Of a stretch of DNA of 36,148 nucleotides, positions 3,701 through 36,148 are shown piece after piece (the stretch's first letter is position 1; each line of letters starts with the position of its first letter). The notes under the pieces were generated by a model. That model saw only the letters and a program-made list of their open reading frames with translations, did not search any database and was not told the DNA's origin. A program made the translations under genes and the position numbers. This stretch comes from Trichosphaerium sp. ATCC 40318. Taxonomy: Eukaryota > Protista > Tubulinea. Where the stretch lies: positions 1 through 36,148 of the forward strand of contig JALMLS010000113.1 of assembly GCA_038496445.1 (NCBI GenBank), written 5' to 3'.

Positions 3701-6700
3701 TAAAGGCTGTTTTCTCAATGGAGTTTCTTGCTATCTTTAGCTGATGAAACCCACTGGTAGCATCCATTATTGAGAAATAGACTGAGCCTATGAGAGCGTC
3801 TAATGCATCATCTACCCTTGGGAGTGGGTATACATCACGCTTTGTCACTGAGTTCAAAGACCTATAATCTATACAAAATCGTAAAGTGCCATCTTTCTTT
3901 TTAACAATTACAATAGGTGCCGCCCAAGGCGACTTAGATGGTCGAATTAAACCATGGCGAGTAAACTTTTTAATAAAATCTTTGATAAATTCGTGATAGT
4001 GAGGAGGAAAACGTCTTGGAGGTTGATGTAGTGGTTTAGCATTGCCAGTATCAATTTCAAATTTGACGGCAGTATCATTCACCTCAGTAATCTCATCTGA
4101 GAATTCAGTTTCAAAGAAACAAAGCAGATTAAAAAGGATTTTTCTTTGTTCATCATCAACTTGTGCTTTTTCTAATTGTTTTGAAAATAATTTGTGTATA
4201 CGTTTTGCAACTTGTAAAGAAGGTTTAAAGTCTTTAAAAAATTTGATAGCTTCCTTGATGTGTTCACGTGTTTTTTCAAAATCAGCATTTGACGCATTAG
4301 TTTTTACACGTATGACATCTTCACGGCTATCAACACTAATAGCATGTTTTGTTGATGTAACAGGTTCAAAAATGGAAACAATTTCATTAGCATTTAGAGT
4401 AATGTAAGAAGGACTAGCGTTAACAACCTCATATAATAAGCGACCATCTGCTTCTTGCATAGTGAGTGTATGAGATCCGCTTAAACCTTTGTGTTTTTTT
4501 AGAAATTGTATGGTGGCTTGATTTATGCCTTGTGAACCATGACGAAAATGTTTTGCTTTTACTTCTAGAATAGCGGGAGAAAAAGGAGGTATTGTAACAT
4601 CTTTTGTAAGACGACATAAACTAGAGCGTAGTTGTGTTTCAGGAGGAAGTTCATCCACTAAAGGGATATGTTGACCATTTGGTAAAGAAAATAGTTTTTT
4701 CGAAATGTTTATAGAGGCTCCAGTCTGAGCTAAAAAGTCACGGCCCAATAACATTGGTTCTGATAAGTTCTTTGCTATTAATGGCGAGAATTTTGTTTTA
4801 AAAATTGGAAATTCAAATTGTAATGGTTGTTTTGTATAACCAATAAGAGGTAAGGGCTTACCGTTGGCAGCCATTGAGTTTAGCTTGTATGGTTTGTAGG
4901 TTCTCAGTCCTATGTCATGTGCAGCCTTTAAACTAATTAGGGTGTGTGAAGCACCGCTATCTACTAAAGCAAGGATTGATTTTCCATTAATACGAACGAC
5001 AACATAAGCTGAAAAAGTTTTATCTAAACTAGTTTGGTTTACAGTGTTACTGTTGGCATTTGGCGCTGGAAATTGGCTTGCCATTGGATACGAGAAATAA
5101 GGAGGCAGCACATGCATCTGAGTCGAGGGTAGAGGTTGAGTATTCAAAGGAGATTGTGCTGGAGCACTAGGAGAAGGTACTGTAGATACGGGGGAAGGAC
5201 CAGTTGGCATTGACATGTTTGACGGAGGTTGTTGATACTGTACTGATTGATAGTGAGGCCAATAACTTGGCATCGGTGTTCCTGGTTGTTGTACAACCGG
5301 TTGAGGCGTTGGTGTTGAAGCGTTGGTTCTCACTGTTGTTTTGTTTAACATACATTTTTCTTCTTTGTGACGTCCCCATTTCGCGTGATGATTACACCAA
5401 ATCCACCTGCCTTCATTCGGTTTTTGGGTTTTATCTAATAAGCGCTTCTCCCATTCTTCCTTTGTATATTTCTGGGTTCTTGGAGTCGTCTTTGAAGGTG
5501 TGGAAGTATTCTTTATAGTTGCCTTCTTTGTAGTTTTCTTGTATCGTTCGATTCTTTTTGCCTTCAATTCTTCTTTTTCTGCTATCTGTAATAATTCGGT
5601 GACATTGTTGTCCGTAGGTTCTCCTTGATTGATAACAGCGGTTCGTAAAGAGTCTTTCATCTTTGCCAATAATTCGTCATAAAATCCTTTTCCGTGAGGA
5701 TTGACTCCAGCGTGTTTAGCCAATAGCATCTTTTCTTGATAATAATCGTTGAAAGAAATATCTTCTCCTTGAGAGAAATCTCGGTAATTTCTCATGACTT
5801 CATCGTAATCGTACTTTCCTTCAAACTCTGTAATGATGTGATCCAACAGCGCTTGCGGGTGTGGTAATTCAGCTACTCCGTTATAGTTGTTCTCATACCA
5901 TTTTTCAGCTGTGCCCTTTAACTTGTTAATCATAAAACTTGATAATGCCGAATCTGAAATATTTGTACTGGCGTTGTATTGTTGTAGTTGATGTCCGAAT
6001 AACCTAACACGGCTTGGAGTACCGTCAAAAGGTTTTACAATGTCTTGTACCACGTTTTGAGCGTTGAATAAAGGCAAGAGAACGGAGAGGAGAGATATGA
6101 GCTGTCCTTGCGCTGATGCATCAGGATCAAAATTTTGAAATGTCGGAGGAGGTTTCGAAAGAGAAATTCTAGCTGGCTTGTATGTTGATGGTGGTATTGT
6201 AGCTGTACCACCAGTACTTGGTTTATTTGGTGGTGGTGGAGGAGTTTTATCAGATGTTGGAGTTGTTGTAGGAAGTGATATAGTCTCGTCTTTGGTATTG
6301 TCTTCTAAAATATCATATATTTCTTCTTTTAGTTTGTCGGCGATCTCTTCAGCAGCTACAGAAACAGCGAGGCCAATGACTTCTTCAACGTGTTTGCTAA
6401 TGTCGCTAATCTGTAGTGGTATGTCCAGCTTCTTTAATTGTTCCTGAATACTTTGTTTGATACGCTCTTGCGTTTCGGTAGAAATGGCCAAATTTTCGAT
6501 TTGGGTGTTGAGTTGGGATTGATCCGTAATAACTCGCAAAGTTCTGTCGTTGTAAGGTCTAGGCATTGCTGTCGTTTGGGTAGTTGGGACAGGAATATAT
6601 GGAGAGCCAGGAGTTTGTAATGAGATTCTCGTAGTAGGCGTCTGGTATGGCGTGGATGATCGGTGTAATGGTATACTGCGAGCAGGTGTTGCTGGTGCCA

Positions 6701-7142: not shown

Positions 7143-7669
7143 CCATCAAAGATGGCGCGTTTAATGAAAATGACGGGACATAAAGTAAAGCGCATTAAGA
7201 GCGCAGCTTCCACTTGAAGGTTCTTTACAAAACCAACACACGGAGTTATTGATATCCCGGACAAATGGAAACGGAAACATATGCGAATAGTTGTACATGA
7301 GATGGGTAATGACATTTGCCACAATACAACTGCACCTTGGAACATACAGGGTGCTTGAGTTGGTTTTGACTAAAAAATGAAGTAAAAATACTATTGCTTT
7401 CACTGTGTTTTTGTGATCTGGGTAGAGTACTAAGCTAAATGTTGTTTGTAGTTTGACAGTACAGTTTTTCAAATATTGTTCACGTGATATGTACATCATG
7501 TTCTTAAGAAATGTTTTAGAACCTTTCAATACGACGAGCAACCACTTTCTAATACTAGGTAAGAAGCTGGGAATGAAGCTAGCGAATGAAAGGTAGTATT
7601 ACTATTCCACTTGAATTGTCTTTGGAAAACTGCCGTGTGCACTTTTTGAACATGACTATTCCAGTCAGC

Positions 7670-10600
7670 ATGACAAGAGGTAACCACTCTTTCAAACATT
7701 TGTACTTACATTTTGAAGGTCTTGGAATATTGCTGGTACTATCACTATTCTGCAGTGCTTATTGCGCTAGCACCTATGATCAACTCAACTCTTTGATCTT
7801 TAAAAACAAAGGTACTGCTACCCGTTTTGAACAACTTTTATTAAAACGTCGTACGTCCTTCAATAACCGTTCTGAAAGGTCGTGTTGACAATACAGATGT
7901 CTTTTTTCATAAAACGAAGTGTGGCGGTTACGTAGAACCTCTAAACGTAACAAAAGCGCGTTATTCATGGGATTTACGAGGTGACTACCCATTTTTGTTC
8001 AAACAAACCGGCGAGCCATCAAAATGTAACGCTTCTGCTCCAATAAACTTCAGAAATCTTCCTGGCATGGTAAGAAGGTATTACAGAGGCTAATAACTAA
8101 ATCACGTGCTCGTAGGACTACAAAGCGATTATTCCTGATACAGCTTCGGATGCACTCTGCCAAAAAGCTTGTTGTGCCGATGTACAGTGTCGTGCATGGG
8201 TTTTCGAGTAAGAAAACTGACAGTCTTTCCTTTCTAACCCTCTGTTAGCAAAGCGGCGCCAGGAGATTTTATGAGCTGTACAAAGGTATTACTGTTGTAT
8301 CGAAACAAAATATCTTTGTAATTAAAACCGTTTAGGGGCAACCTTGCTGTTATCTTAAAAACGGCGTTCCTGAAGGCAAATCTGACTCTTGTTGCTCTTC
8401 TGGTGTTGTTTCCAGACTTGATGGTACTACTCCACCTTCTGGCATGCGTAGTGCTGTACCACTAGGCGGATTTGGTGCAGGTTCTTTCGAAATTCGAACG
8501 GATGGTGAGTACTTTAGTCAATGTCTTGAACTTATTAACGCTGAAAAGGCGGTTTTTACGAATGGACTATTCAAAATCAATCTCCTGGAGGAGCTGCCAA
8601 ATATGGAGTTGTTCCAGATGCTACTCTAGGGTCCGTGTAACGCGTTTTTCAAGTCTCTACACAATCTTACTTTTTTCTTGCTTCAGACTTTGGACACCGG
8701 CTTATACAAGGTTGCTTCGTACTAAACCACCTCAAAACCTACCCGGTGTACAAGCACTTGAATACAGCGGCGCATGGCCTGTCGCTAAGCTGTCAGTCAT
8801 TGATAATTTTCCAATCGATGCTTCAGTTTATGCACATCCGGAGTTCCAGCTGGGAAGCATCGAAGGATCTGCAACCCCTGGAGTTTTCTTTACTGTGGCT
8901 TTATCTAATCCAACAAAAGGTAACAATAATGCAGAATATTACACGCGACAATAATCGTTTTGTTGTCTTGTATCGATCGCGACTCACACTTTTTTGGATA
9001 GAGCCTCAAGAAGTTGGGTTCCTACTTAACTTGCCACTGTCATATGAAGTTGATGTTCTCCGATATAGTGTAGCTAATACAACTGTTAGTGCCCTTAATC
9101 TTGCTGATTGCGCTTCGGTTTGCTCATTGAACGCTTCTTGCGCTTCTTGGAGTTTTGATAAAAGCTGCTATCATCACCAAGATGTCCCACTAAACGTCTA
9201 CAAACTTGGTGCCTACTCAGGTGTTGTGGGATCATGGACCAAATCAAGCTCGGACGGATTAACCCTTACAAGAAAAGGAACAAACCCAGCTGCTGGAACA
9301 GCCTCACTCAAAGCCTTTGGAGACCTTGGCGCCCTAAGCGTTGGATACGCTTCATCAAATTCTTTGCCTGATATTTTCGAAACTTTCAAGAAATATGGAG
9401 ACATATCTTCAATGCCTGAAATGTCTTATGCTTCTTATGGTGCAGCTAGTGTTAAAGGAACACTTAAACCTGGGGAAAACGCAACAATGACAATAGCATT
9501 CGCATGGTAAGGTTTTTTTTCTTTAACTAAAGTACGAACTTAATATCTATTAAGGCACTTTCCATACCGTGATCAGATGGGCGAAACTCTTGGTAATTTC
9601 TATAGAAATTTGTACTCCGACTCAACAGATGTTGTTACAAAAATGATTAGTAGAGTGTCAACAACAGTAGACGAGATAGTGGCTGTTAACAACCTTTTCT
9701 ACACAAACTCTTGGCCAGAATTTCTTCAAGATATTATGATGAACAGTGTAAGCCATTCTCGAACTGCCATGTATTTAGGTGATGGTAGAGTACGCCAATG
9801 GGAAGCGTATGATTGTGTAGGCAAGTACCGTAGACACTTTTAACTGTTCTAAAACGAAATTAGATGTAGACAGTGTACACAACGACTACCAGCGAATGCT
9901 TCCTTACATGACATTTTGGCCTCAATCTCCGCAGAGTAAAATGAGAGGTTGGGCGAAATACCAATTACCTTCAGGCATGATTCAAGAAACATTGGCTCCT
10001 GGGTGTCAAGAAAAACCTAGCAAAATGGATGAAGCTCGTGGAAGAACTATGGCAGATGTTACCTCCTTGTTCGTCGTTGAAGCTCTTCAGATATATGAGT
10101 GGACAGGAGACGAAGTGTTCTTAAATGATATGAAGGATCATGTTATAGCAGCTGCTAATTGGCAAATGGATGTAACAAAGAAGTATGGAATACCTTATAG
10201 ACTGATATGCACATACGACATTGTCAAACTACAAGAGTACGTTTCCTTAAACAAGAAACTGTTTTGTTTTGTACCCAGTTTTTCCGAAACTTACTTTGTT
10301 TTCTTAGTCACGATTTTGCATCATTTACTGCTTTTGTACATTTGTTATCGATGAGAGCTTGTTCTAAGATTGGGAAAATTATTGGAAATAGTAGTTTGGA
10401 AAGTGCGTGTAATGAAAGCTTCAATAGAGGAGTTGAAGGTACCACAAAAAATCGTGAGGGGCTTTATTAATTTGTTTCCCAGCAATAAACAAATATCTTT
10501 GGAATGGCAAGTACTTCCGTGCTTGGAATGATGGGCCTAATGTAATGGCCGACACACTTTACGGACAAGTGTGGGCGTATACCTTGGGTTTGGGAGAGCT

Positions 10601-11541
10601 TGTAGATGCAACACGGCTAAAGTACGTGCTCTATATTTAAAAGCCCGTTTATAATGAATACTAGAATGCAATTAAAAGCCGAAGAAGAGTATAATGATTC
10701 TGATTTTGGTCTTTCTGTAACATCTCCAGGCGATACTAACTCTTCTGCTATTGGTATTGATATTACTGAAAAACAAATAAGCTGTGGTGGATCAATGGCT
10801 CATACAATATGGGGAGGAGGCTCACCAGATTGGTAAACGAAAAAGAGGCTTAAGTTTATTTTTCTAACTGGCAATGTCTAGGTCTGTCTTGAATATATGG
10901 CTTGGTAACGATGTAACATATAGTATGTCGCAGGCTGAAAAGTCTCTTAATTATTGGAGGGATGGTATTCATGACCAATGGAATATACACGCATTGCTTT
11001 CTGATAACGATAAATCTTGGGGAGACCAAGCTGGATATCCTTACATTTCAAGCCATTATGGCTTTCACATGGTTCTTGTACGTACAAAAGTGCCTTTCTT
11101 ATTTGTGAATAATTTATGTCACGTGCTCATACAAAGACTTTGTACTTCTTTGGTTACTTTTTTTTTTTCAAAAAACAAAACTTACATCAAACAAAATTAT
11201 TTTCTCCTTTCTCAGCCATAATCACGTGGGTTTTTTGTTCTTTAATCCGCCTTTACTTGTGTTTAATGTTGTTTGTTTGTTAGTGGCATATCCCTCTTGC
11301 ATTATCTGGTCAGTACTATTCTGTTCCCGAGAGTGTATTATCGTTTAAACCACAACTTCAAGCGCCATACACGCTGCCAGTATATTTACCTGGAGTACTT
11401 GCATTTATTAAAAAAGATAGCTCTCAATATACATTCGGTGTTGTCATTGGAAGCATTGAAGTAGATACACTATCTATTGATAATCATGCGTACAAAACCA
11501 AAGTATCTCTTAAAAAAGGTGAATCAATAGTTTGGAGTTAG
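7670..11541 (+). CDS. Secreted glycoside hydrolase, GH116/GBA2-like, with PAN/apple-like Cys modules (multi-exon)
   Basis: Spliced N-terminus [20 protein letters not shown] is signal-peptide-like. [16 protein letters not shown]...CCYLK and [16 protein letters not shown] are PAN-like. [17 protein letters not shown] (GBA2_N), [45 protein letters not shown] and SHYGFHM match GH116-type proteins. Stop TAG at 11539-11541. Confidence 0.85.
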
Positions 11542-11832
11542 ATCAAAACTGTAAAGTTGCTATATTCAATAAACTACGTATTGTACCCACTCAGGTTACG
11601 TTTCTTAGGTGATACACTTAGCGAAGTCGTCTAAGACACTGAAAAGGTGAGCTCCTGGGAAGGGAATTAAAGCTAAGCCAATCAAAACCAATGTTTTGAC
11701 GAATGATGTTGTTGAAGCTATGAGAAACAGCAGTAGCACCAAATCTAAACCCACATCTCAACAACGCTGAATATAAAAGAGTGGCCACTGTACGGTATGG
11801 TAAAGCTAGGTCGTTTTATTATGTTGTTTGCA

Positions 11833-12691
11833 CTACCATCTATCTTCTCTCCAAGTTATTCCTAGCGCCTCAACAGCGTCTTTGGTGACACGAGTTGCGT
11901 TACATGCATAAATAGATTTAAGTGATTTTAAGTGCACTAAACAATCATTCGTAATGTTCTTGCAATTGTACAATTGAAGATGTTCAAGCTTGACAAGGTA
12001 CTTCATACCTGAGTCGTAATCTTATCACAATCCAGAGTTCAAGTTTTTTGAGATTGGTCACGTGCTTTAAACCCGCATCTGTGATGTCGTTACAGACATC
12101 CAAGCTCAAGTTTTTGATGTTTTTCAAAGGTACAAAATCATCGTCTAAGACATTTGTAGCAAATAGAAACTGCACATTGTCAACTTGTTCAAGCCATTCA
12201 TCAACCTCTAATCTGAGATCTTCTTTATCTTTTTCATGGATACAACCAGTAACACGGCAGTCATACATGGCTACAGTATGTACTGATTTTAGAGGCTCAA
12301 GCGACATCTCACCACTATTTGGATAGTACAAGTTAACTGAGTGAACTGGGGATGTCCGTTTACTAAAGCAAGAAGACCAGCCTTTGTAAATGTTACATAA
12401 CCTAGATTTATGGTGTGAACACCTTTAAGACAAGCCAAGTCATTTGTAGAAAGTTCTAATCCTGCGTCAAATTGTATAATTGTGTTTCTCAATAAAGGAC
12501 TGTCTTGGAGAAAAGCACAATCTGACGGTTGTTTCAACTTTAGCCAAAAGAAACCAATATTTTGCCTAATAATGTTGTTGAAGCGATGTGAAACAGCAAG
12601 CACGAATGAGGCACTTCGTAAGTAGTAGGCGCCGTAGAATAAGCGTTAGTATCTTGTTCGGTACTCGTTCAATAACTTCATCTTGTGACAT
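11833..12691 (-). pseudogene. Intronless F-box + leucine-rich-repeat gene with several frameshifts (pseudogene or consensus errors)
   Basis: F-box-like IERVPNKILTLILRRL...VSHRFNNII and AMN1/FBXL-type LRRs (LSLDVCNDITDAGLKHV, LQLYNCKNITNDCLVHL) are spread over different frames. Five single-base additions give a 287-aa ORF. Confidence 0.75.
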
Positions 12692-12856
12692 TACTATTTG
12701 TCGTTCTGTTGCCAGTTGTGTTGCTATGTAAATGTTGATTCTTTAAACGTAAAAATATTAATAACACGTGCAAAGAAAACCGGTTGTACCTTTAATCTAC
12801 TGTCTAACGCGTTGGTAGTGTCAACACAACAAGACAATTGCATTCAACGAAAATTC

Positions 12857-13153
12857 AATATTTATTAAATTTAGATTGCACACTCAGTTAACTGAGTTGA
12901 AAAAACTCCCGACGAGGGTCTCGATCCCTCGACCGTACGGTTAAGAGCCGTACGCTCTACCAACTGAGCTAGCCGGGACTTGTCGATGGGTTTGAGTAAC
13001 GTTTGTTGGGATTCTATAAAATCTAAACCTGTCAATAATTAGTTTTAGAGTAGTACGCACAAACACCATAAACGTTCCAGTAGTTTTCCAAAACGTACAC
13101 TTTATACATACGGTGCTACATTGAAAGTTGTTAATTATTGGCACATCAGAAAA
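12857..13153 (-). repeat. Left arm of a 297-bp inverted repeat containing tRNA-Lys
   Basis: Reverse complement of 15856-16152, with 3 mismatches found by eye. Confidence 0.95.
12906..12978 (-). tRNA. trnK-CUU: tRNA-Lys(CTT)
   Basis: 73 nt. Acceptor TCCCGGC/GTCGGGA + G73, D-arm GCTC/GAGC, anticodon arm TACGG-CT CTT AA-CCGTA, T-arm GAGGG-ATCGAGA-CCCTC, followed by a T6 Pol III terminator. Confidence 0.95.
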
Positions 13154-13968
13154 GCATGACACAACTTGCTGCTTTTCCTGTTTAACTTATTTTCTTGTTT
13201 AGGCGTATGTGTTACTTTTGTAGATGAATGTACCATGAGCCAAGTACTACAAATAGGAGCTACTTAACTTAGGTGACAACGTAAAGGCCATTACGAATGT
13301 GCAATTTTGTTTTTACATTGTGCTATAGTTCAAGAAGACTCTGGCTCTCGATTGAAAGTCTGGCGAATTACCCCTACTCCGCAACCCTGTGTCACAGGTA
13401 TGAATAAAATACCTACGCAACCCATACCAAGAGAAACTCAGTGATAGTAGTAGCTACCATTAAAAACACAACAAGTTACTTTGTCTTTTTAAAGCGAAGA
13501 TTTGAACAAACTTTTCATGCATGAATGAATATGTTATTGCACGTGTACAAACACCACAACGTCCCTTGAAAAACTTGTATTATTGTTGAGTACAATAAAT
13601 AGTCTTTGTTTTGTTATGAAAATACAGCCATATTTAGGCGGTTCATTTGGCATACTTCAAGGGAACGGAAGCAGGTACTAATCCTCTTTTTTTTTTCCCC
13701 AACAAATGTGGTTCAACACCTAATATAGAGCGAACTTGTAGTGAATTGGATGTTTCAAAACACGTTTAAATTGCTTAGCTTAAATTTGTAGTTCATTTTC
13801 TTTTGAAAGCAGACAAGAACTGATACAGATATGGTGCCAAACACGAACAACATTTTTTAGAGTAGACTCATAAGGATAAGGACTATGGCCCTTTTATTTA
13901 GCGCATCTCCGAACACAAGACTACAATTTGAAATGAAGGCTAATAATGAGTTTATTAAGATAACGAAC

Positions 13969-14521
13969 TTAACATTGTGGTAAGATAGTGACACCCTTGG
14001 TACATGGGTCGTAAGCTAGAATAGGAACAGGAGCATAGCTATTTAAAATCGTTAAAAGAAAACAACTGAAGGAAAGGTAAGTACCCAGAAGATCCAAAGT
14101 AGAAGCTAATAGTCATCGGCTGTGAGGCACACAGATACCCTTTGAGGTCAAAGTACAAGTCTCCACAAACGTTTGTTTGGGTGCCACGCGTAGATACCCA
14201 TTTACACGTTTGCGTTTGGCACCCAAGAGTGCAACGCAATTTGCTTGCTATGGATGAGTTAGAAATCTAATATTTTACTTGGAAAAAGTTGATTGTACCC
14301 TGTGGCGCCTGAATAGGACCCAAACTGTTGTTGCCTTTTACATCAACAGTAACTATTAAGTGTTCTTTCGTAATTAGTATCTTCAGGACAGTGCAGAAGT
14401 AGGCTGCATTGTAACGTGATACCAAGTTTTTAGGTCTCAATTCGTATCTTAGAAAGTGACAAGCACCTCCACCATATCCGGGCTGGGATGGGCTGATTTG
14501 TTGCTGTTCTCCGTATTGCAT
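13969..14521 (-). CDS. Small Cys-containing hypothetical protein (~150 aa, 3 exons)
   Basis: Two phase-compatible introns join MQYGEQQQ...GNNSLGPIQAPQ / ASKLRCTLGC...FYFGSSG / YAPVPILAYDPCTKGVTILPQC*. Confidence 0.7.
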
Positions 14522-15855
14522 GTTGATGAGTTGTTGTTGATGAGTATTTGAGTTACAAATGAAGATACCGAACATAGATTGTTAAGTTGTGTGTACTGGT
14601 AACTTTTCCTTTTAGTCTACCTTTGATGATTAGTTGACAGGCTGCTCGCTTTTATAGTCTTGGCAATACATTGAACAACACGTTGTATATAGTTTTAGGG
14701 AGCATTGTCTTTGGGTAGTATTTAGTTTTTGCTCGAATATTAGTAAAAGCTAATCTCCAAAAACGCTGTAGGAACAGTGTGCAGGTTTATTACTTCAAAT
14801 CCCTTTTTGTGTTAGAAATCACTTCAAGCGATAAGTGAAAACAATGTATACAATAAAAAATTTTCGCTACATGACAGTGAGATTGAATGATTACTAATAC
14901 TACGTTCCCAAAATTGTTTCTGGATTAGTTTTTTTTGGCTGTCACTATTCAATAAAGACCATTTTAAAGTAATAACAACTTTCCACTCTAACAAGAATAG
15001 AAATGTCATATGAAAACGTATTTTCTACGCACTAGGCGAGAGGTAAAGCTGTTATCTGTTCTTGAAGTTTTGACAACAGAAAACTAGAAAAATATGATGA
15101 CTGTCATTTTTCCGCTAATAGTACACGTGGGTGCATAAAGTTAGGCACTTGTTAGAAGACAGCAGAATATGATTTTTAAAGCCATACAAACTATTCTACA
15201 AGTCTTTCTAGGCGCACTAGTGCATACATGTACGATTCAAATGGAATTAAATGACGGCTGGCACCTAAGTCATCTGTTGTACTCGGTTTTAGGACATTGT
15301 TTCCCCAAGCAGTGGAATAAATACGTGGCTTGATATGAGATAAATGAGGTTGTGACTGCTATTTATTTATTGTCTGTGTCATTCAAGTTAGAAGGGTTTT
15401 TGCCTACTATTACAGTATCCTTACGCGGTGGTAAGAGAAAGTCATGTGTTTGCATCATGACTGTGCTGGCTAACTAAATAAATGTAAGTTACTAAATATG
15501 CGAAAAAACCAAGAAACGATACTGCTTCATTTATCTCATTTTTTAAGCAGGTTATTTTGGTCGCACCGTTGTTTTAATAACATCTCTATTTAGCCGACAA
15601 TTAACCGAAGAATTGCTATAACTGGTTAAGCCGAGACCTTGACCACGACCACATCTATGCATATATGTGTAATTTTTGATGGCAGGGAATCTGTTGTTCA
15701 CAGTTACTACGCTTTGAACTTTGTCACATTAGTTCATAAACTTACAGTGTTGGCGGCTTGTTTTGGCCATGGTAATATAAGATATCCGTTATTGTTCATT
15801 TGTGCGAACAAAAGCATGTTACTCAACATTTCATAGAGATTTTTATGGAGCGTTA

Positions 15856-16152
15856 TTTTCTGATGTGCCAATATTTAACAACTTTCAATGTAGCACCGTG
15901 TGTATAAAGTGTACGTTTTGGAAAACTACTGGAACGTTTATGGTGTTTGTGCGTACTACTCTAAAACTAATTATTGACAGGTTTAGATTTTATAGAATCC
16001 CAACAAACGTTACTCAAACCCATCGACAAGTCCCGGCTAGCTCAGTTGGTAGAGCGTACGGCTCTTAACCGTACGGTCGAGGGATCGAGACCCTCGTCGG
16101 GAGTTTTTTCAACTCAGTTAACTGAGTGTGCAATCTAAATTTGATAAATATT
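15856..16152 (+). repeat. Right arm of the 297-bp inverted repeat containing tRNA-Lys
   Basis: Reverse complement of 12857-13153. Confidence 0.95.
16031..16103 (+). tRNA. trnK-CUU: tRNA-Lys(CTT)
   Basis: Identical to the minus-strand copy. TTTTTT terminator at 16104-16109. Confidence 0.95.
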
Positions 16153-16320
16153 TAAATACAACTTAATTTCTCATGAAATAACTTAAAAAGTATATTAGTA
16201 TACTTACAAGTTATGTTTGTAGCTTGCTACGACGACTTTATCATTGGCTGTTGCATAACACAAGTAGCACTAAACTGCAGAATAACTTTTTGCTTTTTCT
16301 CTTATCAAACGATTCATAAA

Positions 16321-19300
16321 TTAATTTTGTGTAAATTCTATTAACAAACCACAAGTATCACTATTAGTTTCCACAGATGCCATGTGTCTTAATGTTTCAA
16401 GGTTCATTTTGCCACTGACAACTAAATTATTTTTGTTTTGATATCTCTTTATCAAATCATAAAAGCAAAAAGCCTCATCAACGTCAATGACCTAAATATA
16501 AGTCAATTAACTTTATACCTCAAAAAACGATTGAGCATTTGATTACCTGTTTAGCGGATACCTTAGATTGACATTTGATTACTGTTTGTTTTAAAAGTAA
16601 AAAAATTGGTGCTAAAACTTCAGTAACTGGTGCAACCATCAACGCTCTGTTAATATCACAACAAGTGTCATTCAAAAATTGCTATAAAAGAAACAATAAG
16701 TAATGTACTCAACAAAAAGCAGAACACTGCGCCAACAAAGGCGCTTGAGGTAAAAATATGGAAAAAGAAGGAAATTTGTTTCTCTAAGCTTCAATCAGCC
16801 TGCCATAGGAAGCTTTCAAGCAATCAACGTACATGTATTAATTCTTCCTTCATAGCACCTGAAATGAGCGAAACAAAACCCTGTAGATGTTATCAACAAA
16901 ACGAGATTTACGCAAAAAAAACAAGAAAAAAACAAGATTAACGTACTGAAAGCGCTTCACATGTCACATTAGATATGACATCTAACTTTGGTGTATAACT
17001 TTTAAGAAAACCCAAGCAGTATAAATACATGTGCAACTTATCTATAAGATTGCAAACAACGTCATTAAGTATTTTTACTTGACGCTCATCCAAAAACTCC
17101 GTCTTGCCATCAATATCTGCATCTATCGTAACAACAAGCATCGACTGTTGGAACACTTGAAAAACAAGTTGTAAGCTAGATATCAATTCTGTCTATACAA
17201 CACGCACCATTATGATATGATTTGCAGAATTGTTTTGCTTCACTCCTTACAATATTGAATCGAACTTTGTTCGATACATTTGTTCCAAATAACTTTAAGT
17301 TGTGATTTAACTGAAGAAATAGCTGGTATCTATCAAAGTTCCCACCTGGAACATGATGTAACGTATATTTTGTTTTAGAAGTATCTGCTGGACAACCAAG
17401 AGCATCACCGATTGGTGTCTATGAGAAAGTAAGCTAAGAAAGTTGCGAAAGAGTTTTGATTTAGTACCGGTATGAATAGGTCAGAAGTTGTTTGCATGAA
17501 CTTTCCAATAGCACTTCCATTTGTTTTCTTATTAGCTGTCACGACCACAGCGTACACCTAAAATATATAAGCACAAACACAAAGAGGGTAACCGTACAAT
17601 ATCACGAAAATCATCAGTTTTCTCAAGCAATGTTGAAACATACTTTGTTGTATTAAAAAGCCTATAAAACGTCAGCACATCAACATTGTGACAGTTCATT
17701 ATAATGTACCACTCTTCCACAATATACAATTTATAACCTTTTAATACTTCCCCTTCGGATTCAATATCTATTAATCCTTCTTTTGCATACTGACGGTATC
17801 TTCCTAAACGGAATCAGTTTATACTTTCAAAAAAAAATTAGAAAAAAATGTACTTGGTTCACAAATGACAATACGCTGCCCTTGTGCTATACCCCTATGC
17901 TTTAATTTATCTACAGTTAACTCTATTCATATAATTTAGAGTACATATGACAAAAGGAATATTAACACACCTTTAATAAACGTTGCAGCAAGGTCAAGAT
18001 TTGTAACATAATATCCAATCTCGCCTGAAAACAACTCATCAATTCCAAACTCTTGGACAAACGCAAGTAGTCTAAAATAAGCGTGTTATTAATACCAACA
18101 ACTATGGAAATGTGATATGAATACACATACGTTCTGAGTGACTGTATCTTCGCCTTTAAAGTGACATAAATCAAGATATCCAAAAAATCATCAGCGGAAA
18201 CGACTTCTTTTCCTGAGACTTGGCGTGCTTCTCTAATAATTTCTTTTGCGGCTTTTAGTACACACTCCCTATATGATCCGTTAGCTATATATTTTAATGT
18301 TACAACAAGTATAAATATGCGATAAAATGAGCTACATACAATATCTTCGTTGGCGTGTGACAAAATGTCATTCTTCTTAACTTTGATATTGCAGCCAGGT
18401 AAGGCGCATAGTCATCTGAACAAAACTCTTCTTTTATATCTAATTGAGCTTGCGTAATATCTGCGAATGACTGACACTTCTTAAGAAGTATAGTATCCTC
18501 TTCCTGGCACTCAACTTGCCTTGTACATTTGAAATACAACTTTGGATATAAATGTGATTCAAGACAAATCTAAACAACATTACAATCCGAAACTACGCTA
18601 TACTCAGTACCTTAAACTGCAGTTTCGTTATTCCTTTTGGTGGAGAACCCGTAAGACGTATTATATTTACACTTAAGACTTCAAGGAAGTCCTTGACCTT
18701 CATATCTGTAAAAGAGTCAACTTGGTTTTGAAAATAATAAAAGAGGATGTTTGCATTACCTGTGTACGGATAAGTTGTGAAAAACTTTGTCACGTGGAAA
18801 CCAACACCATCTGGTGTTTCGTCATTCAAATGCGTTTTAATAGCGCGTATTATCTCATCAGTGTGATTCAAAGCGTACTGCCTGAAAAGCAATTGTAAGT
18901 ACTTACAATGACTGATTTCTAATTAACGATATTCATGTACGTACACCTTTTGTACAATATTGGTACTTTGCATGCGCACCACATCTGGTGAGGGGTCTTC
19001 TAAAAATACAAAACCAAGCTTTTCAATATCAGAATCTAAGTTTGCACTAAGTACGATCAAAAACAAAAAAAAATTTGTTGACTTACCTTCATTTATAGCC
19101 ATTTGACGGTTCAAGTCATCAACACGCTTCTGATATGATTTGATACTTTCTTCAGAAAACACTCCAGCCATAAAGACTTCGACATAGTCATCGGGAACAT
19201 CAACACGTACTCTAGTTTTGAATATGTCAAATACCACGTGCTTGAAATAGTTTTATTTGACGTACAAGGCTTCAAGTCCTCGTATAGCGTCTTTAATACG

Positions 19301-26033: not shown

Positions 26034-28108
26034 ATGATTGTAGCAACGGCATTTGCACTAGTCATTGCAATTTTTATTGTAGTGTTCTTACGCGTGTATG
26101 GTAGTAAGCTAAAGGGCTATCTAAAAGTTATGTTTGCCTATACTGGGATACCAAGACAGCCAGACGCGGAAACGTTCCCTTGGAAGTTTGGCTATAGTCC
26201 TAAAGCGTACGAAATAGTTTAAACGATAAAATAACGACAAAAGTTCATTAATAGAGGTGTAGGCCTGTTAAGCGTATTACTGAGTGGCCAACAACCACAG
26301 ATGGTAAAATCCACAAATTGGCAGTTCTGTCTCTTAACCCTTTACACGGTTCTTCGTTTATTGGCGTTAGCGACAGTAACACTATTAAGCAGCTTATAAG
26401 AGATAACATACCAAAAAATATGATAAACTACGAAACAGTGCGTTCATCTTTATTGAAAAAATCGTTCTACCTCCGTATCTGTTTTGTCACGTGCGGAATT
26501 ACAAATATTCCGGTCTTTTAAAGAAAAAGTATTTCTTGAGCTAAGCATTTAGCTGTACTACAGGCAATCGAACGGAGAAAACGTCATGAACAAAGAAATT
26601 GTTGCAGTAGATTGTTTTTTATTTTTTTCTCGAAAAATTGGCTTTTAATGTTGTGTTTAGATTGGTGAAATATTTGGAGATGGCCTTGTATCTATGCAAA
26701 CAGGCGATATCTGGAAAACACGTAGAAGACTGTTAACGCCTGCCTTTCATTTTCAGTCATTAAAAGCGATGATTCCTATGATTTCAGAGATATCAAAAAA
26801 GGGTTTAGATGACCTTGAAAAGAAGATAAAAGATAAGCCAAACGGAAAATATGATACTCCATCAAAGAAAGAAACACCTTTCATAACAATGCGTATCATA
26901 ATTGCTGTGATATTTGGTGGCGATTTTGATCACGTGTGGTTTGCTAATCACTTTCGTAAACTGATTGAAGCGATTCGTACACATTTTCTCTATAAGTTTG
27001 CCTTCGCTGGGCTCTATGAATACAAGTACGAGAACCTGATTTCTCTTCAAAGTTACTCCAAGTACAAGCCTACTGATTGTCGTTTAGACTGTTTAAACAA
27101 CTCAAAGCTGAACTTCTTGATAAGTTACATGCTGCTATAGATGACAGACGTAAGCGTATTAAGGAAGGAAACCCTTGTGATGACTTGATAACTCTGATGT
27201 TGTTGGCACAGCCTGATAATCCAGATATTCTTACAGATGCTACAATAGCGAATGAAGCTCTGCTATTCTTCTTTGCAGGGCATGATACAGTATGTAATTA
27301 AGCGGAATTGGTTTGTTATTAAAATACAGTTTTAGACATCTGTTACACTTGCTTGGGCACTGTACGTGATGTCAAGATATCCAGAAGTTCAAGAAAAACT
27401 AAGACAAGAGGCGAACGATCTGCTAAGTACATACAATTCCAGTAATAACAATGAACTAAATGAACGACTAAGGTGACGGTGAAACAATATCAACAAAGCA
27501 ACAACTTCATGAGTTCAAGTACACCAAAGCATTCATCAAGTACGTTCTCTTTAAAAACAACTAGAATCTAATTAAATCCAAAGGGAGACTCTAAGAATGT
27601 ATCCACCTGTTCCTGAGATACCACGTGCTCTAGCAAAAGATACAACGTTTGATGATATAACACTAAAAGCAGGTCAACCTGTAATGCTCAATTTTTTTTT
27701 TGTGATGCGTGACCCAGAACTATGGTATGTGTAACACTCTAAGATAGGTATTAAGCCATTTTGTAGGAAAAAGCCAAATACTTTTAATCCAGATAGATTC
27801 TTGTCTGTGGTAACGAACCCTTTTTCTTGGATCCCTTTCAGTGCTGGTCCAAGAAACTGTATTGGTCAGAACCTTGCAATGACAGAGCTCATTATCGTGA
27901 TTAGCAGTATTGTGAGGCGTTTTAAAATCACAAAGCCACCAGGTAAGCGTTCAATGTGAACTTAGAAATAAGGTTAGTTGTATTGTCTTTGATGATTTTA
28001 TTTGTAGACCAGAATGAAGATCCATCTGATATTAGGGCCACGTATCATGGAGGGTTTCTTAATGAGCCAAATCCAGATCTCACAATAATATTAGAATCTC
28101 TCAAATAA
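26034..28108 (+). CDS. Cytochrome P450 (CYP4-clan-like), multi-exon
   Basis: N-terminal membrane anchor, WKTRRRLLTPAFHF, I-helix FFFAGHDT, ETLR, PDRF and the heme motif PFSAGPRNCIG. Stop at 28106-28108. Confidence 0.95.
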
Positions 28109-29468: not shown

Positions 29469-30818
29469 TAGAGGCGTTGCTCGGATAAAATTTTTTACCT
29501 ATATTACGTCATTCTGAAGAAATCACATGTTAAGATCGGTTTACCCTATCAAAACTCCTTGAGAAATTTAGAGATTTTTTACAGTTACTAATCCTCCTTT
29601 ACGGAAGTTTAAACCGATTACTGGTGCAAGTGTGATCTTTTTACTTTTTGAGTTGAGGTTTGCAGGTTGTGTTGGCAAGGGGTCAATGATAGGAGTATTC
29701 GGAGGCTGCAAAAAGGTATTTTTTAAGATACCAGAATACTGTTGTGATAATTCACCATCAGTAATTCTTAGAGCAAAGGCGATATTGTACGCAGCTTTTG
29801 TATTTTGCACCAAATAGAAGGGGTGCGCTTGTGCACGTTAAAATAAAAAGATATGGCAGGTTTTTTAGTTTGCGGCACATTTAGTTCACCCGGATGTCAT
29901 TATATGAGCGGAAGAATAATACCTCCGCTGGAATTGCAAATCTTTTAGGTAATTTCAGGTATAGCATATAAGTCAATGCTATGGCAATTACGTTATACTA
30001 AATGCACAAGAAACAGACTAAATGCAACAAAAGTTGTTTTTACTACATTGTCAGCACGTGTTCATTCATTTTATCCTTTGGCTCGTGAATTACACTTGAG
30101 ATATCTAAGAACGAACCAAAACTCCGCCCCACGTGCATGATATGACGTACTTACTCTAGTAAACCAAAACGTTACGTAAGTTTTCAAGAATTTGAAACAA
30201 ACCAACTTTGTTGTTTTAAAAAGCCGCAGGAAGTCCATTAAATCCGTTATGTGAAAGAGACAGCTCAATTGTTGCAGAGTGGGTCTCAAAGTTATGAATA
30301 TCCCACAACAGAGGTGCCGAAACCTTAGTTGGGATGATCCCTACAACCAACAGCTTCCAGCCAAGGAAAAAGCTCCAGACAAGTGTAAAGTTTGCCGCAA
30401 ATCGATGGTAGTACCGTGTAATCGCGTGTGGTACTAATTAAAATAGGTATCGTTTCATAAATCAAGTACACAGTATAGATGGCATTATAAATGTGAGGAT
30501 AGCGTATGTAAATACCGGGAGACACTTATTTCGCCTTCTGCCTTTATGCGAAAAATAAAAGGGACATGCGCCTTTAAAGGCAAGTTCCACTACATGGCTG
30601 GCACGGCAGATACAGTACGTTATCTTTACCTGCTTTTTTACGCCTTACAAGTTTATTTCAGATGAACTGTAAGAAATGTTCATACACCGAGTCGTATTAA
30701 ACAACTTAACGCGTTGTCTGTACTAATATGTAATAAAACCAATTTGCCATTTTAGTAAACTGGTTTTTGTTTAAGTACCACAGTGACGCGTGAGCCAATA
30801 CACAACATCACTCGTGAG

Positions 30819-32222
30819 ATGGCTAGTACTCAAACTACCCTACAGGCAAAGCTTGATAGGCTCAAAGACGCAACTGCAAAGTTAGGTACATAGCGATATG
30901 TTTATTGTTTCCCCACGCACAACGGTGTTATTAAGGAGTTATAACGCTATGATAGCGCAAAATGTACCAAATGATCCAAACAGCGCATTTATATTCGCTG
31001 CGCTCAAAGGAGAGCTTAATACAATAAATGAACTCCTAAAAGACGTTAACACAAATGTCAACGCAAAAGATGAAGAGTCAATGACAGCGCTTCATTGGGC
31101 AGCTGCTTATAACGAGCCAAGGGTTGTAGACGCTTTGCTGAATGACAAACGTGTTGATCCTAATGTGCCTAACAAAAGGCAAAATACGCCATTACATCAA
31201 GCTGCGATGTACGGTAAGTAATCAACCCAATTCTTTTAGTCGTTTTAATGACATGTTGTCAAAACAAGGTTCTGCGTTGTCAGCTGAGCGTCTACTAAAG
31301 GATTCACGCGTGAAGATAGATGCATGCAACGAATGGGGTGAAACTCCGCTTTTTCTGGTACGAGCGCCAAAAATGGTAGCAACGTCTAACATAACTCTAG
31401 GCTGCAAACGGTGCTAACAAAGAGGTTTGTGACCTAAACCCTTTAAAAAACCCTGGAACGTTACGCATTCTAAACTGCTCAATAGGTCATGTTGTCTCTT
31501 CTCAAAGGTGGTGCCGACTACAAGATAAAAGATAAATGGAATAGAACACCATCAGAGGCTGCTAAGGAACACGGAGAAACGGAAATAAGCGAAGTAATAA
31601 AATCTTTTATTGCCGGAACCTATGTAGCCAAAGATGAAAGTAAAACTCAGCCGGTACCAAAGAAATCCGGTGTAAAAGGTAGAAGAGAATCTTAAGCAAA
31701 ATGATGGAAGCACCATTAAGTACAGAGAAGTTCTTGGGGTGGCTCAAAGAAGATGACATTGATATCTTGGGATGCGATATGTACAAGTGGACGGCACTTC
31801 ATAAACTTGCTTCGTGGAACAAGTCACAATGTATAGAAGCAATGCTAAGCGACCCTCGTGTTGGTGAAGAGAATATTTCAAAGAAAGGTCAAGGAGGTGA
31901 CACTCCTTTACATTGTGCTATTGAGATGCATGCGTCTGCTTCTGTGGATGTTTTACTAAAAGACGAGAGGGTCAAAAAAAATATTAATGCTCTAAATGAT
32001 AAAGGTCTCACTCCTGCTGATGTGGCTGTTAATTCAGGTAATGCTTCAGCGCTGAGTATTTTAAAGGATCTTGGCGCTGTTTGTGGCAGTAGCGGAGGTA
32101 CAGAAAAAGAATCTCACCTTCCTGAGCATTATGGAAAGACTGAGAAGCGCGCTGTCAAGAAATTAAATACAAATAAGTTTGCGGCTCTTGCAAAGGCAAT
32201 GGGTAAACCAGCTCCAAAATAA
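30819..32222 (+). CDS. Ankyrin-repeat protein (multi-exon)
   Basis: MTALHWAA, NTPLHQAA, GETPLFL, WTALHKLA, GDTPLHCA and GLTPADVA repeats. A ~30-nt intron near 31654-31682 joins the last two ORFs in frame (TQP|KRILSKMMEAPL). Confidence 0.9.
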
Positions 32223-32515: not shown

Positions 32516-35500
32516 ATGGATAAACTTTGCTCAGTACGAACGAAGGATGGCAGACTGCTGGAGATCAAAGAGTGCTCTATTCGTGTAGATATATGGGGTT
32601 TTCTCGCAAAAACAACCGTTCAGGTCTTTTACAACCGTTTTACCAACTTTGTCACCTGAAGAACCTAAATACCTATCTAGATGACTTTTTTTAATCGTGG
32701 AGACACTGAGGAAGAGGCAGAATTGAATTTCCCCTTAAACGAAGGTGAGGATACAAACCAAAAAATTCGCCAAACGAATCCAAACTTTTTCCTCGTTTCT
32801 TCACCTCTTAAGTGAATGAGATTATCAATATGGCTACTCGAATACTGAGAGTTTAATCTAGGTTCTACAGTTTGCGGTTACGCTTTAGATGTAAACGGTG
32901 TCATGGTAGACGGCGTAAGTGGTTGTTTGTTCGAATAAAAAAGTTAGTGTCTTGAAATGCTTACTTTACTACATAGGTTGTAGTCCCTAAAGATCAAACT
33001 AGAGCTGCTTTTGAAACCTCAGAAAGGACTAACAATAATACTTGTGGTATGGTTGAACACGTGCGAGGAAACGTGTACAAAACACGTATCTACCCAGTTC
33101 CTAAAAAGTAAGATAAAACCAAGAAAGCTTAAAACCTGACAACAAAAAAGGGGTTCTCGAGCTGTTAGACTTGTATTCTCTTCGCCTTTGAAGGTCCAAG
33201 AAAAACAAAGACAAGAAAAAGCAACTAAGGAACTTGAGTACAACTTCCCTCTTCAATTTGTTGAAAGGATTCCTTCTTATTCCGTTCTAGCGAATGTGAG
33301 TGCTTACACTATGCATGTTTTACCACTAATTGACTCGTTTAGGTGTCCAGTGACTGTGGCATTAAACCAACTAAGTTTAGTTGTAATGGCAAGCCAGTAA
33401 CCTTCTCGAAAGGTCATCAGGTACATTGTAGTGAACATACAAGATATGTCTGTTCTCTTATTAACGAGCTACAAAGGGTCATTCAGGTCATTTTGAGCAA
33501 AAAGATATATCTGCAAATTGCAGTATAATCATACGTGCTACAACAGATGAACCTCTACTATTGGTTGAAAAAGACAGTAAAACAAGTACTGTTTTTTTTT
33601 CGTTGATGGACATTGTTTCTGAACAAAAAACCAGTAAGCCAAGGTACCGTGAAGATAGTCTGCGTTTACAACGTTAACTGATGCTTTTTTGTAGAATTGG
33701 TTCAGTTGTGAATCACTTGCTTGTTCTTTGGGATGCTTCGCTTAGCCAGCAGAATAGCAAGTGTTTGGAATCATTGAAAAGAATATGTTCGCCACTTGGC
33801 AAAGTGGTTGTCGACATAATACCGTTTCGCAATGAACCAGATGCAATGACTTCGTTTGATGTGTCTCATAGCACTTCCGAAATGGAGAACTTCCTGAACA
33901 ACATTGTATACGATGGAGGTAAGTCACGTGACCTAGTAACGATTCTCACTTAGTATCTAGCCAGCGCTTTCTATAATCTACACGCGAGAGCATTGAACAA
34001 GAGTGGTACAGCCTATAAGGCTTGTCTTCTGTTTACGAACGGATTCGCAACAATAGGTACTGCGTTTGCAAATAAGCGTATTTTAAAGCACAAAAGGTCC
34101 TCTTGAGCTTGGAAGTACCGAGTTACGTGTATTCTCATTCTCTCATGATAAAGAAGTAAATCATGATGGTTTGAGGAAGATATCTAAAGCTTCTGGTGGC
34201 GTATACACCAATTTGAAGGCAAACACAAGATTATGTAGTTTGCACTTATACTAATGTTTGTCTTTAGTCATCTGTGAACTTTTCTTCTCTTGCTGCGTCT
34301 ATTCTCAATGTCCAGAACCAATTTTCTTTGTTGCGTATTGAAAGAGGTGATAATTGCGTTACCGATGTGTACCCCAAGCGAAAAGAGGCTGTCAGTCAAG
34401 ACCAGACTGTCATGGTTGTAGGAAAACTGAGCGCTAGCACCAATCTGAAGCTTTGTACAGCTTATTTGTTTGTACCACTACTAACCCTTCGTAGGCTATG
34501 GCTATACCAGTGAATCCATTGCCCATGAGTTTAAAGTAGATGTCAAGGGAGTGAAACGAGGCAGATTTCTTGGAAGGCTATGGGCTCAAAAGAGAATCTC
34601 AGGTTTGTAACAAATTACTAATGTCTCCAGCTTACATTTTTAGATATCCAAGAAGATGCCAATAATAACGAGCGCCTTGCGAAAGAAATGATAAGTTTAA
34701 GTACTATGTATGGAATCGTTACGCCAAAGACATCTATGCTGGTACTTGAGTCAGTTATGCAATACGTCAAGTACGAAATACCACCTCAAAGATGTTACCC
34801 GGTAAGAAATTTCTTACACGTGCTTAATTTACTTAACTGTTAGATATGAGAGCAACTTATTTTGCAATAATGAACGCCCAAATTAAGGATAAAAAGGATG
34901 AAAAAGAAGAGCGGATTCAGTACGTCTTATCTCTTTGGAATAGAAGAGTCGGTATGTAAAAATACTCAAAGGTTCTTTGTTTATTCACTAAAACATTAGC
35001 TTGGTGGGGTGAGAGTGGTGGAAATGTTTCATTGGCTCAGCACCATTTAGATTACAATATTGAACTAGAGACTAAGCATTCATGCGTTCGTACGTAAATC
35101 TATCAACAAGCCAAACCTTAACACTTCGTTAAACAAGATGATTTTACCAATGTTCCTCAAATCTTGCGTATGCCTGAAGACCAACCTTCAGTGATGGCTG
35201 CAGAAATTAAACAAGATGAATATGATCCTGAATTATTGGTAGCCATGGGTATTAATCAATCAGACATAACAGAAATCTTCAGTGTACAAAAAATATTCTT
35301 CCCCAATAATAACAAATTTCGACAGATGTTTGATAAAGATGGGGATGATGAGCTCACCAAAGGCGATATACATTCTTTAATGAGTGGATTGGGAGAAGCT
35401 CTTAGTTCTGCAGAGGTATGAAAGTACTGATTCTTGAAACAACTAACTTTTAAGGCTGCTGAGCTAGCACAAGGTCTCAATGCCCTTAAAACGAAACATC

Positions 35501-36148
35501 TGAAAAAACAAAGAGATACAAGTCCAAGTAGTAGGAGTTTGTCAAGAAGGGAAAATTGAATCGCATTTATCAACCACTAGTGCTACAAAGAAAAGTAGCA
35601 GAACAATACAATGACATTGAAACGTCAATTTCTGCTTTGCCTTCTAGTACTTCATCCGAAGTTGTTGATCGTAGTCTGGCAGCCTATATGATACCTCTAT
35701 CAGCATCTGAGGAACCACAACGTGAATTCTCACGTAAACGAATAAGGGGAAGACCGCTTAAGAAAAAGGCGGAAAAGAGATCCGTACCACAAGAAGTCCA
35801 ACCAATTACCACGTCAGATACCAATACAGTCGAAAAACGTACAACATGCCTTTTTAGTAATGATATTTACTTTTTATTCTTATTATAGGTAAGGCAATGA
35901 GTGTTAAAGCAGGAGATGTTATTGTCGTAAACGGAAAAGAAATAACTATTCAAAAAGTACGAAGATCTCGCCCTGGTAAGCATGGACCAGCGAAGGTTGC
36001 TGTTGTAGGTACGTAATGTTTCTACTATTTTCATTTCGTGCTATTGAATCGTGTTTATTCAAATCACGTGATGGATTTTCGTAGGCATAGATTCGTCCGG
36101 AAAAAAAGTAGAACAGTTAAAAAGGAGTAATGATAGCTTCAACATTAA
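32516..36148 (+). CDS. VIT + vWA-like + EF-hand + eIF5A-like multidomain protein (3'-partial)
   Basis: VIT: [33 protein letters not shown]...GNVYKTRIYP. vWA-like: LVLWDASLS, YDG, LLFTNG. Then RLWAQKRI, GIVTPKTSMLVLE and WNRRVAWW, an EF-hand FDKDGDDELTKGDI, and SRPGKHGPAKVAVVGID. Confidence 0.85.

Follow-up and report, generated by a model that had tools for sequence, protein, structure and literature searches.

Tandem eIF5A N-terminal (hypusine-loop) modules in a predicted large VIT–DUF2135 scaffold protein of the amoeba Trichosphaerium sp.

The closest described relative of the domain reported here is found in eIF5A, a stand-alone factor of ~17 kDa. Its hypusine has been called the most specific of known protein modifications, confined to one residue in one protein family, and decades of labelling in other eukaryotes have yielded no hypusinated protein besides eIF5A (PMC9117371). 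The contacts of deoxyhypusine synthase (DHS) with eIF5A are made by the N-domain, at its three-stranded sheet and loop, and do not extend to the C-domain (PMC10042821), and minimal substrates have been delimited to aa 30-90 for DHS and aa 20-90 for DOHH (PMC9117371). The amoebal locus described here shares with eIF5A/aIF5A (PF21485 plus PF01287) the N-domain signature, the G-K-H-G-x-x-K loop and the G-x-D-x-x-x-G-K-K strand. However, it does not encode a stand-alone factor: the OB domain is missing, the N-domain occurs as a tandem pair inside a predicted large VIT...DUF2135 protein, P or I stands in place of H53, and identity to the host eIF5A is ~37%.

Departures from the canonical eIF5A design have been described before, each differing from the present gene in its own way. 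HEX-1 of the Woronin body in filamentous fungi is a duplicate of the eIF5A gene with a non-translational role; it keeps both eIF5A domains, has lost the hypusine site and self-assembles, whereas here the N-domain alone is retained and the hypusine site is intact. Nmd3, the 60S export adaptor, carries an eIF5A-like SH3/KOW module as part of a bigger protein and places it in the ribosomal E site, beside the L1 stalk (PMC6795138). The protein around that module is unrelated to ours. To our knowledge, the Nmd3 domain was recognised by structure and not by the sequence signature found here, and no hypusine loop has been reported for it. Bacterial EF-P/EfpL (PF08207) belong to the same KOW-like fold class, and the tip of their loop carries a basic residue that is modified, but these three-domain factors have a PGKG-type loop and other modification systems, and eIF5A models score clearly better on our sequence. 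The putative scaffold recalls VIT-vWA proteins (ITIH, PARP4, VWA5A) and DUF2135 proteins of the E. coli YfaP type in its VIT-like N-terminus, MIDAS-like DxSxS pattern and candidate C-terminal DUF2135, but none of these families is known to contain an eIF5A module. A literature search for DUF2135 together with VIT gave no result. Finally, a database protein of 417 aa (P0003) has three tandem eIF5A-like units with GKHG kept in each; its units look like more complete copies of eIF5A, no foreign scaffold accompanies them, and the protein may have arisen by genuine fusion or by reading tandem genes as one.

The window, by which we mean the whole stretch of 36,148 nucleotides analysed here, is C317:1-36148 in a 70.3-Mb assembly of 642 contigs, and the gene of interest is broken by the contig end. 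Its first eIF5A-like exon, exon 1a, occupies 35889-36008 on the forward strand and translates as ...KAMSVKAGD...SRPGKHGPAKVAVV, with the hypusine-type loop SRPGKHGPAK, in which G-K-H-G is followed by a lysine five residues past the acceptor lysine; the loop Lys of GKHG is codon 35978-35980. Module 1 is interrupted by a GT-AG intron of 76 nt at 36009-36084 (+; GTACGT...TCGTAG), supported by the RNA joint C416 6288->6365 (cut +4) in runs X1 and X3, and it resumes in exon 1b at 36085 (+), which reads (G)IDSSGKKVEQ... and is truncated by the contig end at 36148; exon 1b is seen both in sequence and in RNA on C416, a contig whose positions were converted to window positions by an offset of 29716.

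All protein searches were made exon by exon. Exon 1a alone, 39 aa long, matched PF21485 IF5A-like_N with 27.4 bits (E 3.1e-6), just above the cut-off of 27.1, and module 1 reached 28.6 bits in the scan of the amoeba's own genome. The NCBIfam IF-5A models NF003076 (E 5.1e-7) and TIGR00037 (E 3.6e-5) also matched exon 1a, as did PDB entries, 22 of the 25 matches listed being aIF5A/eIF5A (best E 1e-3), whereas the match to EFP_N (PF08207) was far weaker than that to IF5A-like_N (E 0.012). A custom HMM trained on 45 full-length eIF5As and run on the locus, translated in six frames and divided into 1,512 pieces, placed exon 1a first (25.1 bits, E 9e-7, model positions 25-64), with exon 1b a weak but colinear match at positions 63-92. 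The short exons 1b, 2a and 2b, each searched alone, gave no match in PDB or Pfam. The same HMM found nothing credible in the locus past model position 92, and the eIF5A C-terminal OB-fold domain PF01287, absent from the locus, occurs genome-wide only on contigs C8 and C4. The module is not part of an eIF5A of the usual stand-alone size (~130-175 aa), its exons being spliced on to further 3' coding exons. Thus, the proposal of the initial annotation that this end of the window holds an eIF5A N-domain with its modifiable lysine loop is borne out by Pfam, NCBIfam, PDB and HMM alike, and by the lead of the eIF5A models over EFP_N, and we regard it as confirmed that an N-terminal domain of eIF5A type, with its hypusine loop, is encoded by 35889-36008 together with 36085-36148.

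The rest of the gene can be read from two other contigs that carry ~98% copies of the region: C416, where the copy starts at base 1, and C142, where it lies on the minus strand. Past the point at which the window ends, both go on to a linker rich in K/R/S and a further module, then to an acidic stretch, TPR-like exons, DUF2135 and a stop, which on C416 lies near 8598; with this continuation, and with the 3' splicing seen in RNA, the earlier suggestion that the module belongs to a much larger gene holds. The candidate module 2 is formed by exons 2a and 2b (C416 6713-6775 and 6818-6920), with the loop AKAGKHGIRK followed by ...GTDVVTGKKV.... Exon 2a (E 0.085, loop positions 41-59) comes second among the 1,512 pieces by the eIF5A HMM, and exon 2b follows it in colinear order in the model; the assignment, weak on its own, draws on the motif pattern, this colinearity and the position beside module 1. 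By an alignment made by eye the two modules are only ~36% alike, and both keep G-K-H-G and K55. Compared with eIF5A, H53 is replaced by P in module 1 and by I in module 2, where A54 is in addition replaced by R. K/R-rich linkers border the modules. The module-1 exons are identical across all three copies, and the module-2 exons are the same in C416 and C142. Further downstream, the TPR-like region matches TPR_19 (E 1e-3), and the TPR and DUF2135 exons match the paralogues described below (tblastn E 1e-8 to 1e-13). The DUF2135 (PF09906) exon of the gene itself is a weak match (18.3 bits, E 0.2), and the DUF2135 exons match the DUF2135 regions of paralogues with E 5e-12; most paralogues exceed the DUF2135 cut-off, which the closest two, on C74 and C44, barely reach.

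Contigs from public RNA runs, X1 and X3 of one study and X2 of another, were mapped to C416:2700-8650. Of the 15 RNA joints listed, almost every one is GT..AG, which indicates that spliced RNA is present in these runs. A single contig of 460 nt (X1 record 6) holds exon 1a, exon 1b, the linker, exon 2a and exon 2b together, with introns of 76 nt, 41 nt and 40 nt in order and an exon 2a of 61-63 nt, and a shorter X3 contig shows the module joints as well. For the passage from exon 2a to exon 2b, the record coordinates imply a 42-nt skip that is readable only as a GC-AG intron (L004:6776-6817). The 460-nt contig includes the last ~45 nt of exon 1a (40-45 nt across runs) with the GKHG codons unspliced. 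A GTAAG at 35976, inside the loop codons, had been named as a possible splice donor that would remove the motif; the RNA contigs seen read through it, and the donor is unused in them. Both modules therefore sit in one mature RNA and in one open frame. When the phases of the RNA-supported introns and of three predicted introns are followed along C416, a single frame runs uninterrupted from the EF-hand exon to the stop. Two of the RNA-supported introns, L004:5564-5605 and 7369-7413, look coding in lists of open reading frames because their lengths are multiples of 3 and they contain no stop.

Upstream of the modules, the exons of the same predicted gene lie at 32516-35415 (+) and are VIT-like, vWA-like and EF-hand-like, with introns of 39-118 nt, seven of which are backed by RNA joints. 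The VIT call comes from exon 32977-33108, which scores 18.4 bits against PF08487 (E 0.0026), under the cut-off of 26.5; the gene is absent from the list of genome-scan VIT matches, in which the paralogues on C74 and C44 appear as weak matches, and its upstream exons are colinear with these two paralogues (tblastn E 1e-7 to 3e-14). The vWA-like region follows the pattern DxSxS...DGG...T(N/D)G, present here as DxSxS...DGG...TNG, and neither the gene's exons nor the one paralogue tested matched Pfam, NCBIfam or PDB there; the VWA_3 profile matches other VIT genes only. A single EF-hand-like loop, DKDGDDELTKGD, is encoded at 35326-35415, with D and not E at position 12, and scores 16.6-17 bits against EF-hand_6/7, for which the cut-offs are 25-30. 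Of the labels given earlier to this half, VIT thus stands on a sub-threshold match plus paralogue colinearity, whereas vWA and EF-hand do not go beyond motif-level or sub-threshold likeness. A basic, Ser-rich linker exon follows at 35455-35838 (+), open over 129 codons in C416 and frameshifted in the window copy; it is entered from the EF-hand exon by the RNA joint C416 5693->5733, from which the contig continues to C416 5813, and it had no match among 5.8 billion proteins.

We consider it likely that the eIF5A modules and the VIT, vWA-like and EF-hand-like exons form one fused protein, in which the joins of the modules to the VIT half and to the TPR/DUF2135 half are predicted ones. The upstream join would be made by a 50-nt intron at 35839-35888 (+; GTACAA...TTATAG) between the linker exon and exon 1a, in phase 1 on both sides. 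In a splice PWM derived from 16 RNA-supported introns, its donor scores 6.4 (top 4% of GT sites) and its acceptor 5.5 (top 8% of AG sites), values typical of the 16 introns themselves; the exons on either side have 41-42% GC and the intron 22%, and GTACAA-type donors are RNA-supported twice elsewhere in the gene. The open 129-codon linker exon of C416 has an estimated chance of ~1e-4 at its base composition. VIT and DUF2135 lie on one strand, 3.3-6.6 kb apart, at at least 11 loci of the genome, the N-half and the C-half are ~200 nt apart in compact paralogues, and both halves of the present gene are colinear with the paralogues on C74 and C44. We also examined a long alternative intron, from a donor at C416 5808 or 5811 to an acceptor at 6172, by which the indels in the linker exon would be spliced out of sight, and rejected it: its donors are poor (-5.6 and 0.6), one contig reads through, and the exon in C416 is open over its 129 codons.

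Two alternatives concern the integrity of the gene. If the 50-nt intron were retained, the upstream frame would end at TAG 35886-35888, 8 nt before an in-frame ATG at 35897 in the opening part of exon 1a, so that a VIT/vWA-like/EF-hand gene could end there and a separate gene with two IF5A-N modules, TPR and DUF2135 could begin. Indels in the linker exon of two of the three copies would fit such a division, as would the RNA, for no contig from X1-X3 covers C416 5813-6244, a span that includes the predicted intron, and the two halves are thus unbridged. However, 8 nt leave no room for a gene boundary, with a 3' end and a promoter; the 50 nt ahead of exon 1a resemble an intron; VIT and DUF2135 are kept as a unit in at least 11 paralogues; and we know of no operons or trans-splicing in Amoebozoa. 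We therefore hold two genes to be rather improbable. The second alternative, that the locus, or at the least its copy in the window, is a pseudogene or an allele in decay whose intact loops are leftovers, takes its support from the frameshifts. The window copy is short of 1 nt at 34786; further on, a net deficit of 4 nt (1 nt at 35537, 3 nt at 35552) ends its frame at TGA 35557-35559. In the linker exon of C142, a +1/-1 pair at the positions that correspond to window 35710 and 35746 encloses a stop. The phase-compatible frame that the initial annotation had traced from the WNRRV exon (~34950) accordingly holds in C416 and fails at that TGA in the window copy. A plain homopolymer error does not account for the change at 35537. 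However, most of the many 1-nt indels among the copies fall in short same-base runs and several are intronic, a pattern that looks like long-read consensus error; the 34786 gap and the C142 pair fall within short homopolymer runs and could be errors of the assembly. Moreover, the gene is transcribed and correctly spliced, the C416 frame is unbroken between the EF-hand exon and the final stop, module exons are unchanged between copies, and the modules, old to judge from their ~36% likeness by eye, are still open. Decay is thus very improbable, and we retain the single fused gene as our reading. As a separate observation, the window copy is mosaic, resembling C142 up to ~34550 and C416 from ~35565.

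The genome also contains the separate canonical eIF5A that the initial annotation had advised looking for, and in fact two such genes, on C8 and C4, each with an N- and a C-domain. The C4 eIF5A exon is 100% identical to an MMETSP0405 peptide assigned to taxon 498012, Trichosphaerium sp. ATCC 40318 (Amoebozoa, Discosea). DHS is present at C213:82080-83268 and C218:85375-86429 with the same exon pattern, and these two loci are probably haplotigs of one gene. The host eIF5A loops read SRPGKHGHAK (C4) and STPGKHGHAK (C8), so that PGKHGHAK is common to both, and the loop of module 1 differs from that of the host solely by H53 -> P. Among 60 retrieved eIF5As, 54 carry one different, common loop form, and SRPGKHG occurs in a single one, the amoeba's own. 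This 7-mer is shared by module 1 and the C4 eIF5A, which are 37% identical over 38 positions. The PGKHG form had been taken to resemble archaeal aIF5A, a resemblance that loses its meaning here: since both host eIF5As have PGKHG and SRPGKHG is found on C4, the source points to a host eIF5A and not to archaea, and the module looks to have been copied from the amoeba's own eIF5A. Both host eIF5As (L009:1501-1854, C4; L008:1402-1701 minus strand, C8) are unusually divergent, the C4 protein being ~40% identical to other eukaryotic eIF5As.

Within the genome, PF21485 has no match outside the present locus, in its three copies, and the eIF5A genes on C8 and C4. None of the 13 paralogue loci carries a GKHG module, and the one GKHG found among them lies inside a VIT domain. 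A search for orthologues with the 39-aa exon against 1.84 billion representatives, of low sensitivity with a query of this kind, gave four matches, among them no orthologue and no protein predicted from the amoeba itself: P0001 and P0002 are low-complexity or Cys-repeat false matches, P0004 looks like an aIF5A-type fragment, and P0003 is the triple eIF5A protein introduced above. A search of the Atlas without PF01287 clusters returned only short EFP_N/IF5A_N fragments (score 0.87).

As the best explanation of these observations, to which we give a probability of roughly 0.45, we propose that tandem IF5A-N modules in a large VIT...DUF2135 scaffold are recognised by DHS and have their loop lysines modified. 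The protein would be laid out as VIT, vWA-like region, EF-hand-like loop, basic linker, two IF5A-N modules, acidic stretch, TPR-like region and DUF2135, with the modules as internal coding exons of one large protein, inserted in the variable centre of a scaffold family. Each module would correspond, by eye, to human eIF5A residues ~30-85. The protein is predicted to be cytosolic, because no signal peptide is seen by eye at its predicted N-terminus, and would there meet cytosolic DHS. We favour recognition by DHS because the modules span residues ~30-85 and keep G49-K50-H51-G52 and K55; that two modules as dissimilar as these both keep the loop suggests constraint on the loop itself. Both loop lysines would then become (deoxy)hypusinated, and the scaffold would gain eIF5A-like cationic probes for RNA or ribosome binding. 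Taken by itself, the step that the modules are actually hypusinated seems to us somewhat doubtful, and it is unlikely, if well worth considering, that this scaffold of a free-living amoeba, ~150 kDa by rough estimate, is a genuine second DHS substrate hypusinated on two lysines.

The same anatomy could also serve without modification. The modules would then be basic KOW/SH3-like binders of RNA, of the ribosomal E site/L1 stalk or of proteins, with the GKHG turn retained for the fold or for RNA contact. Nmd3 offers a precedent, its eIF5A-like domain sitting in the E site as part of a larger protein (PMC6795138); paralogues have RGG runs and a WH2 motif at the same place; K/R-rich linkers flank the modules; and hypusine has so far been found in eIF5A alone (PMC9117371). 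However, the retention of both G-K-H-G and K55 in such diverged modules goes beyond what a β-turn needs, and the modules cover nearly the whole minimal DHS substrate, which leaves the unmodified binder a possible but unlikely reading. In another version, the modules would be pseudo-substrate adaptors that sequester or recruit DHS and/or DOHH. Binding to DHS needs only the N-domain surface and the loop (PMC10042821), and a tandem pair would raise avidity for the DHS tetramer; a decoy, however, would more plausibly lose its acceptor lysine, which both modules retain, so that we consider an adaptor role improbable. Our preferred reading therefore remains that of modules modified by DHS.

The gene is real and expressed, and its domain combination is unusual. 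Whether or not its lysines are modified, a core translation factor domain has been shuffled into a family with a highly variable central region, and the gene offers a natural test case for the status of eIF5A as the sole hypusinated protein. If the modules are hypusinated, the rule of hypusine in one protein only would be broken, the eIF5A N-domain would be a transferable hypusination tag, and hypusine would have a role outside translation elongation; if they are not, the gene would show that DHS/DOHH have needs beyond the loop and the fold.

The scaffold family is expanded in this genome, and its central region, from the vWA-like part to the TPR part, varies between paralogues. For example, the paralogue on C44 (L022:3920-4900, 5154-5384) combines RGG repeats with a WH2 motif (Pfam E 4.6e-5) and an FH1-like run rich in proline, that on C87 (L025) a long RGG run, and that on C74 (L024:2389-4588) actin-like fragments with a weak Pfam match. 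To judge by these comparisons, the eIF5A modules occupy the region that took up different modules in other paralogues.

Several neighbours of the gene were also noted. On C416, ~1 kb past the gene's stop, an insertion of 7.5 kb relative to C142 (~9512-17074; L006:1-7074) is a retroelement of the Ty3/gypsy type, whose ORFs measure 609, 410 and 797 aa. It has Pfam matches to RVT_1, dUTPase, RT_RNaseH, Integrase_H2C2 and rve, and it represents a presence/absence difference between haplotigs. In the window, an ankyrin-repeat gene lies directly upstream of the gene (30759-32219) and a cytochrome-P450-like gene further upstream (26661-27956), both recognised by eye from their translations. On C142 (L005, reverse strand), an intronless ORF of 470 aa, of F-box/LRR type by eye, lies downstream of the gene.
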